The position numbers and the translations under genes are program-made. 64,000 nt of DNA from Vicugna vicugna. Taxonomy: Eukaryota. Below are positions 39,561 through 62,817 of the stretch, piece by piece. The notes beneath the pieces are model-generated. The model saw nothing but the letters and a program-made list of their open reading frames with translations, was not told where the DNA came from and ran no database searches. Within the stretch, counting starts at the first letter, position 1, and the number at the start of each line of letters is the position of its first letter. The stretch spans positions 1,025,651 through 1,089,650 of the forward strand of contig MU062062.1 in assembly GCA_013265495.1 (NCBI GenBank), written 5' to 3'.

Positions 39561-62817
<23,257 letters not shown>

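Follow-up and report, generated by a model that had tools for sequence, protein, structure and literature searches.

A clade-restricted Thr-Asp replacement in alternative exon 16b of the phosphofructokinase gene PFKP

The 64,000-nucleotide stretch of DNA analysed here (the window) includes part of PFKP, and between exon 16 (16a) and exon 17 of this gene lies a diverged tandem copy of exon 16 (16b) in which the activator-site serine of the regulatory half is replaced by aspartic acid. The reading we favour, and which we hold to be somewhat better than an even bet, is that 16b is the orthologue of a known PFKP alternative exon, that its Thr-Asp pair arose within the clade of the window species, and that, if spliced, it would give an isoform less responsive to the activator. 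PFK1 catalyses the committed and most heavily regulated step of glycolysis, and the serine in question is part of the site of its strongest activator as well as the O-GlcNAc switch which diverts glucose to the pentose phosphate pathway. Were this reading true, a natural Asp isoform would be a ready-made experiment on the role of that serine, and the function of the PFKP alternative exon could differ between mammalian lineages, a matter of consequence for extrapolating the biology of PFKP-205 across species. It also corrects the first-pass annotation of this DNA, since the exon switch does not in general work through the Asp.

The two copies of exon 16 and the known exon pair

The features of the window to which we refer are the following.

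62755-62741 (-): SIDND of the catalytic half, the first Asp of which is the homologue of exon 16 codon 30 (Ser/Asp)
50396-50244 (-): PFKP exon 16a, constitutive type; 153 nt, phase 0, cag/G...GAC/gtgagt, open frame
50309-50307 (-): codon 30 of 16a, tcc, the Ser540 codon, read from the sequence
46710-46675 (-): 3' splice region of 16b, with a CAG acceptor, a C-rich tract and two CTGAC motifs that are candidate branch-point-like elements (A at -12 and -32)
46674-46522 (-): PFKP alternative exon 16b, diverged tandem copy of 16a; 153 nt (51 codons), phase 0, cag/G...GAG/gtaaca, open frame
46644-46642 (-): codon 11 of 16b, ACG (Thr), derived in the window's lineage; GCG (Ala) in the close relative
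46620-46618 (-): codon 19 of 16b, now CGC (Arg) through a change on the window's branch; the relative and other mammals have TGC (Cys)
46590-46585 (-): codons 29-30 of 16b, ACT GAT (Thr-Asp); comparison with homologues gives ATT AGC (Ile-Ser) as the ancestral state
46587-46585 (-): codon 30 of 16b, gat (Asp), read from the sequence
46521-46516 (-): donor (5' splice site) of 16b, GTAACA, with C at +5 (46517); the close relative and five other mammals have G there
43862-44026 (-): exon 17, the next exon downstream and acceptor partner for 16a or 16b

In translation the motif reads ATVSNN in 16a and ATTDNN in 16b. The 16a protein is identical to human PFKP residues 511-561 at 50 of its 51 positions, which makes codon 30 Ser540, as had been estimated in the first-pass annotation; the native PFKP numbering, which takes 28 residues of 4xyj to be a tag, is consistent with V539 in Lam et al. 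The Ser (tcc) and Asp (gat) codons had been assigned correctly in every coordinate, and the SIDND placed in exon 5 at 62741-62755 is indeed present there on the minus strand.

The best matches of 16b among solved structures are human PFKP (E=4.5e-14), then PFKL, PFKM and the yeast PFKs, and as judged from these alignments its similarity to PFKP is far beyond chance. The exon is homologous to the regulatory (C-terminal) half of eukaryotic PFK1 (Pfam PF00365) and carries the scaffold of that half, P-A-T-x-x-N-N-x-P-G-T/S-D-x-S-x-G-x-D-T-x-L-N, with P21, P26, A27, T28, N31, N32, P34, G35, T36, D37, S39, G41, D43, T44, L46 and N47 all intact. Where the regulatory half has Ser (PFKL Ser529/PFKP Ser540), in the place corresponding to the catalytic Asp, 16b has Asp. 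In the second HMMER alignment this residue falls opposite the Asp of GSIDND in the N-half, and the homology proposed earlier between codon 30 and the catalytic Asp is thereby upheld.

Exons 16a and 16b are separated by an intron of 3.6 kb and agree in length, phase and AG/GT sites; the donor of 16b (GTAACA) is probably weaker than the GTAAG found in six other species. Since both are of 153 nt, double inclusion or double skipping would preserve the reading frame; no feature enforcing the exclusivity of 16a and 16b was found in the window sequence. A run of 68 Ns (42612-42679) also lies inside the gene, downstream of exon 17.

The exon pair has already been described, and 16b is not a new exon. 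Human PFKP possesses a mutually exclusive pair, PFKP-203 versus PFKP-205 (Lam et al. 2021, PLoS Comput Biol, PMC7954323, S4 Text; preprint 10.1101/292813), in which Val539 is changed to Ile beside the fructose-bisphosphate effector site, and a count of 236 tandem duplicated exon substitutions in human includes PFKP (Martinez-Gomez et al. 2022, PMC9741552). The NCBI entry "PFKP isoform 10, partial [Pongo abelii]" (P0231) reads ...IIGGFE / AYKSACDMAEARGLHQELCIPVCVVPATISNNVPGTEISLGSDTGLNAVVE / TCDRIKQSA..., in which an exon of the 16b type, with Ile-Ser, joins exon 15 to exon 17. Together, the published human pair and the orangutan spliced model support 16b as a genuine homologous alternative-exon candidate. 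Two models from Acipenser sinensis (P0011 and P0002, flagged UNVERIFIED_CONTAM) join an exon of the 16b type (AFECLLQLTEARSRYEEFCIPMCVLPATISNN...) to exon 17, which hints that this type of exon is older than the amniotes.

Distribution of the Thr-Asp pair

Orthologous exons were reached via the short ORFs that gene callers had left over 16b-type exons in raw genomic contigs, and six contigs were compared. L001, L004 and L006 are colinear with the window, the order in L006 being exons 15, 16a, 16b and 17-20; in other species, as in the window, 16b thus lies between 16a and exon 17. The 16b exons of five other mammals, which are colinear with the window, have a CAG acceptor and a GTAAG donor. 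In the five more distant mammals the codons read ACC ATT AGC AAC AA(C/T) or AGT (Thr-Ile-Ser-Asn-Asn/Ser), and the hominid 16b exons, seen as protein sequences, are also Ile-Ser.

Position 30 was tabulated across 236 homologous segments, in which it is Ser 219 times, Asn eight times, Asp seven times, and Leu and Gly once each; none of the 236 has Thr at position 29. Those Asp cases which bear a name are bacterial fused PFKs (Arcanobacterium). Among columns with at least 86% conservation, the window exon departs from the majority residue only at positions 20, 29, 30 and 33. In a tree of the exons, an 18-row group comprising the window 16b, the orangutan isoform-10 exon and other amniote 16b exons stands apart from the 16a types (84/84), and 16b thus clusters with the alternative exon of hominids rather than with 16a; the tree was built on 51 columns only, and its support is accordingly moderate. 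As a single-sequence protein query the 51-aa exon gave no match, an exact look-up of the window 16b ORF in the protein collection returned no entry, and metagenome scans for the motif gave 0 matches.

These comparisons indicate that the 16b exon is old and that the Asp is no part of the old exon. The first-pass annotation had treated the Asp as a property of 16b that would make a splice-encoded allosteric switch, and had named a lack of conservation among orthologous exons as grounds for refutation. Outside a narrow clade this is what the comparisons show: five other mammals, the hominids and 219 of the 236 segments keep Ser, and the Asp as a property of 16b at large is not supported. In most other animals, then, 16b keeps the serine, and the Asp is best described as a local variant of a known exon switch, not a general mechanism. 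The phrase "splice-encoded allosteric switch" is a reasonable hypothesis for this clade only.

The clade comprises the window species and one close relative. Contigs L009-L012 come from four runs of a single species and are mutually 99.6-99.97% identical, and they align to window positions 43997-50273 with 4.9% substitutions. The 16b exon of this relative is identical to that of the window at 151 of 153 positions and has the same ACC ACT GAT. Because ACT GAT is common to both species, the Thr-Asp pair is older than their split; as far as the sequences compared extend, it is shown to be derived and restricted to these two. The 31-mer share predicted from L009 (0.553) agrees with the exon-word share of the runs of organism A (0.55), and organism A, a much-sequenced relative, is very probably the species of L009.

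The relative was found with an antisense ORF of 272 aa (46407-47225, +) that runs across 16b. This ORF, situated in GC-rich DNA, is spurious; it is open only because the derived codons read TAT CAG on the plus strand, where ancestral ATT AGC codons would put a TAA stop (TGC TAA).

Constraint on 16b and changes on the window's branch

It is possible, if on the whole somewhat doubtful, that in this lineage 16b survives as a relic, little used as an exon or not used at all, and that Thr-Asp, Cys19Arg, Ala11Thr and the weak donor are the products of neutral drift without regulatory meaning. The rate of amino acid change speaks for this explanation. Across comparisons pN/pS is 0.46-0.74 for 16b against 0.02-0.10 in the neighbouring exons; between the window and L006 the values are 0.46 for 16b, 0.095 for 16a and 0.018 for exon 17. 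The protein encoded by the window 16b is 55-69% identical to those of other mammals' 16b, compared with 98% identity of 16a to human. All three differences between window and relative (Ala11Thr, Cys19Arg and the donor +5 G-to-C change) are derived in the window when polarised with outgroups, so that the window's branch holds two non-synonymous and no synonymous changes in 16b, and a donor GTAACA as against GTAAGA in the relative. This pattern fits a relaxation of constraint. The arginine at position 19 is presumably tolerable, since it is found in 16% of homologues, while the change at +5 should weaken pairing with U1.

The serine itself has changed elsewhere. Two other mammalian 16b copies have Asn in its place (P0009; and P0144, UniParc UPI00075FFB70, a model spliced to exon 17). 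Given these, the site may be poorly constrained in 16b, and the activator-site serine may have been lost repeatedly in the alternative exon while remaining invariant in 16a.

Against a relic stand the 51 codons, open and free of indels in every species examined, the retention of the acceptor and the GT donor, the intact scaffold residues, a pN/pS which is still below 1, and the annotation of the exon as spliced in hominids. The comparison with the close relative bears on the same point: the two species differ at 2 of 153 positions in 16b versus 5.0% in the introns (Fisher p=0.017), and no intronic 153-nt stretch as conserved as 16b was found in the 6 kb between 16a and exon 17. Since the split, therefore, 16b has been open and better conserved than its introns, and it looks spliceable. 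In RNA-labelled runs of the relative the share of 16b words present is 0.55, equal to the 0.553 predicted from its two mismatches, and that of the words of a 753-nt stretch is 0.29 versus 0.34 predicted for full coverage; as intron words are present beside exon words, these shares carry no information on splicing.

The activator site and comparison with known systems

In PFKL the O-GlcNAc site is Ser529, and the substitution S529A blocks glycosylation of PFK1, as has been reviewed; the modification inhibits the enzyme. Mutation of PFKL Thr527, two residues upstream of Ser529, leaves glycosylation unaffected. At the Ser529/Ser540 position 16b has neither Ser nor Thr as an acceptor, and its new Thr lies one residue upstream. 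With Asp at that position the 16b isoform could not be O-GlcNAcylated there, and in this respect the earlier claim follows straight from the sequence.

The pocket of the regulatory half binds F2,6BP or F1,6BP (Lam et al., PMC7954323). Both the R-state and the T-state of PFKL bind a sugar bisphosphate at the activator site, F1,6BP being present in the T state. An altered response of the 16b isoform to F2,6BP is a plausible inference only. Ser530 of rabbit PFKM has reportedly been mutated; our search of the literature found nothing on Ser530/Ser540 and no biochemical study of an Asp at the position of the activator-site serine.

The favoured reading can be set out as a sequence of events. An old tandem duplication of exon 16 would have provided PFKP with an alternative exon for part of the regulatory half's sugar-bisphosphate activator site. 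In the common lineage of the window species and its close relative, Ile-Ser would then have become Thr-Asp (ATT AGC to ACT GAT). If 16b replaces 16a in splicing, the clade would have a PFKP isoform which lacks the O-GlcNAc acceptor serine and bears a carboxylate in the place that the catalytic Asp holds in the homologous half. This carboxylate should weaken binding of the 2-phosphate of F2,6BP (or the 1-phosphate of F1,6BP), and the isoform would be less dependent on, or less responsive to, the activator. A bolder version, in which one mammalian clade has returned the F2,6BP-binding, O-GlcNAc-accepting serine to the ancestral Asp and splicing of 16b yields a PFKP isoform blind to both signals, strikes us as rather unlikely.

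The first-pass annotation also raised the thought that the Asp might imitate the activated state. On such a reading it would stand in permanently for the bound activator phosphate, and the 16b isoform would be constitutively activated, which goes further than insensitivity to the activator. Its one attraction is the location of the carboxylate, homologous to a catalytic Asp next to the transferred or 2-phosphate. We regard it as very improbable, since occupancy of the site in both states of PFKL means that occupancy alone does not set the state, and one carboxylate would be a poor stand-in for a bisphosphorylated sugar bridging two subunits.

The four substitutions that separate ACTGAT from ATTAGC are all transitions, and they fall within five adjacent bases. 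Reverse-complementing ATCAGT, which encodes Ile-Ser, yields exactly ACTGAT, and a 6-bp micro-inversion may have been the one-step origin of the codon change, though we mention this as a curiosity and not as a finding; given ATTAGC in the outgroups, two synonymous changes would have had to precede it. A stepwise passage from Ser to Asn to Asp is equally possible, Asn being found in other lineages. Four changes in five adjacent bases look unusual, and the codons are covered by no more than one sampled index word, but the chance that they are a sequencing or assembly artefact is practically nil, as 92-100% of the stretch's words are present in runs labelled as the window species, from several samples, and the relative has the identical ACT GAT in three independently assembled runs, which rules out assembly error as their source.

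On the favoured reading, of a clade-derived change in a known alternative exon, 16b may be set beside several known systems. One is bacterial PFK, the catalytic Asp of which (Asp127 in E. coli and G. stearothermophilus) is the general base and is homologous to exon 16 codon 30. The eukaryotic regulatory site arose by an Asp-to-Ser change at the catalytic position, and the C-half nucleotide site of PFK1 is generally regarded as non-catalytic. The Asp of 16b occupies the position of this general base and restores the ancestral residue type; however, the second Asp of the IDND motif is still Asn in 16b, and restored catalysis is for that reason not expected. The fused two-domain PFKs of Arcanobacterium (768 aa) resemble 16b in having Asp in an otherwise regulatory-half-like motif, A-S-I-D-N-N in the second half, but they are bacterial proteins of separate origin. 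The entries P0035 and P0084, with their clusters, are such two-domain 6-phosphofructokinases of Arcanobacterium/Actinomycetaceae, 730-770 aa in length and with A-S-I-D-N-N in the second half.

Another is the human and orangutan PFKP pair, which involves the same gene, the same exon (residues 511-561), a tandem homologous copy between 16a and exon 17, and a difference within the sugar-bisphosphate effector site. There the alternative exon exchanges Val539 for Ile and keeps Ser540 (ATISNN), whereas the window 16b has ATTDNN, with Asp in place of Ser and Thr in place of Ile. Exons 9 and 10 of PKM1/PKM2, discussed together with PFKP by Lam et al. (PMC7954323), present the same arrangement in another glycolytic enzyme, namely homologous, mutually exclusive exons that give alternative forms of an allosteric fructose-bisphosphate site. 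In PKM the switch is conserved and highly expressed, and it has been proven biochemically, whereas the Asp of PFKP 16b appears to be confined to a single clade.
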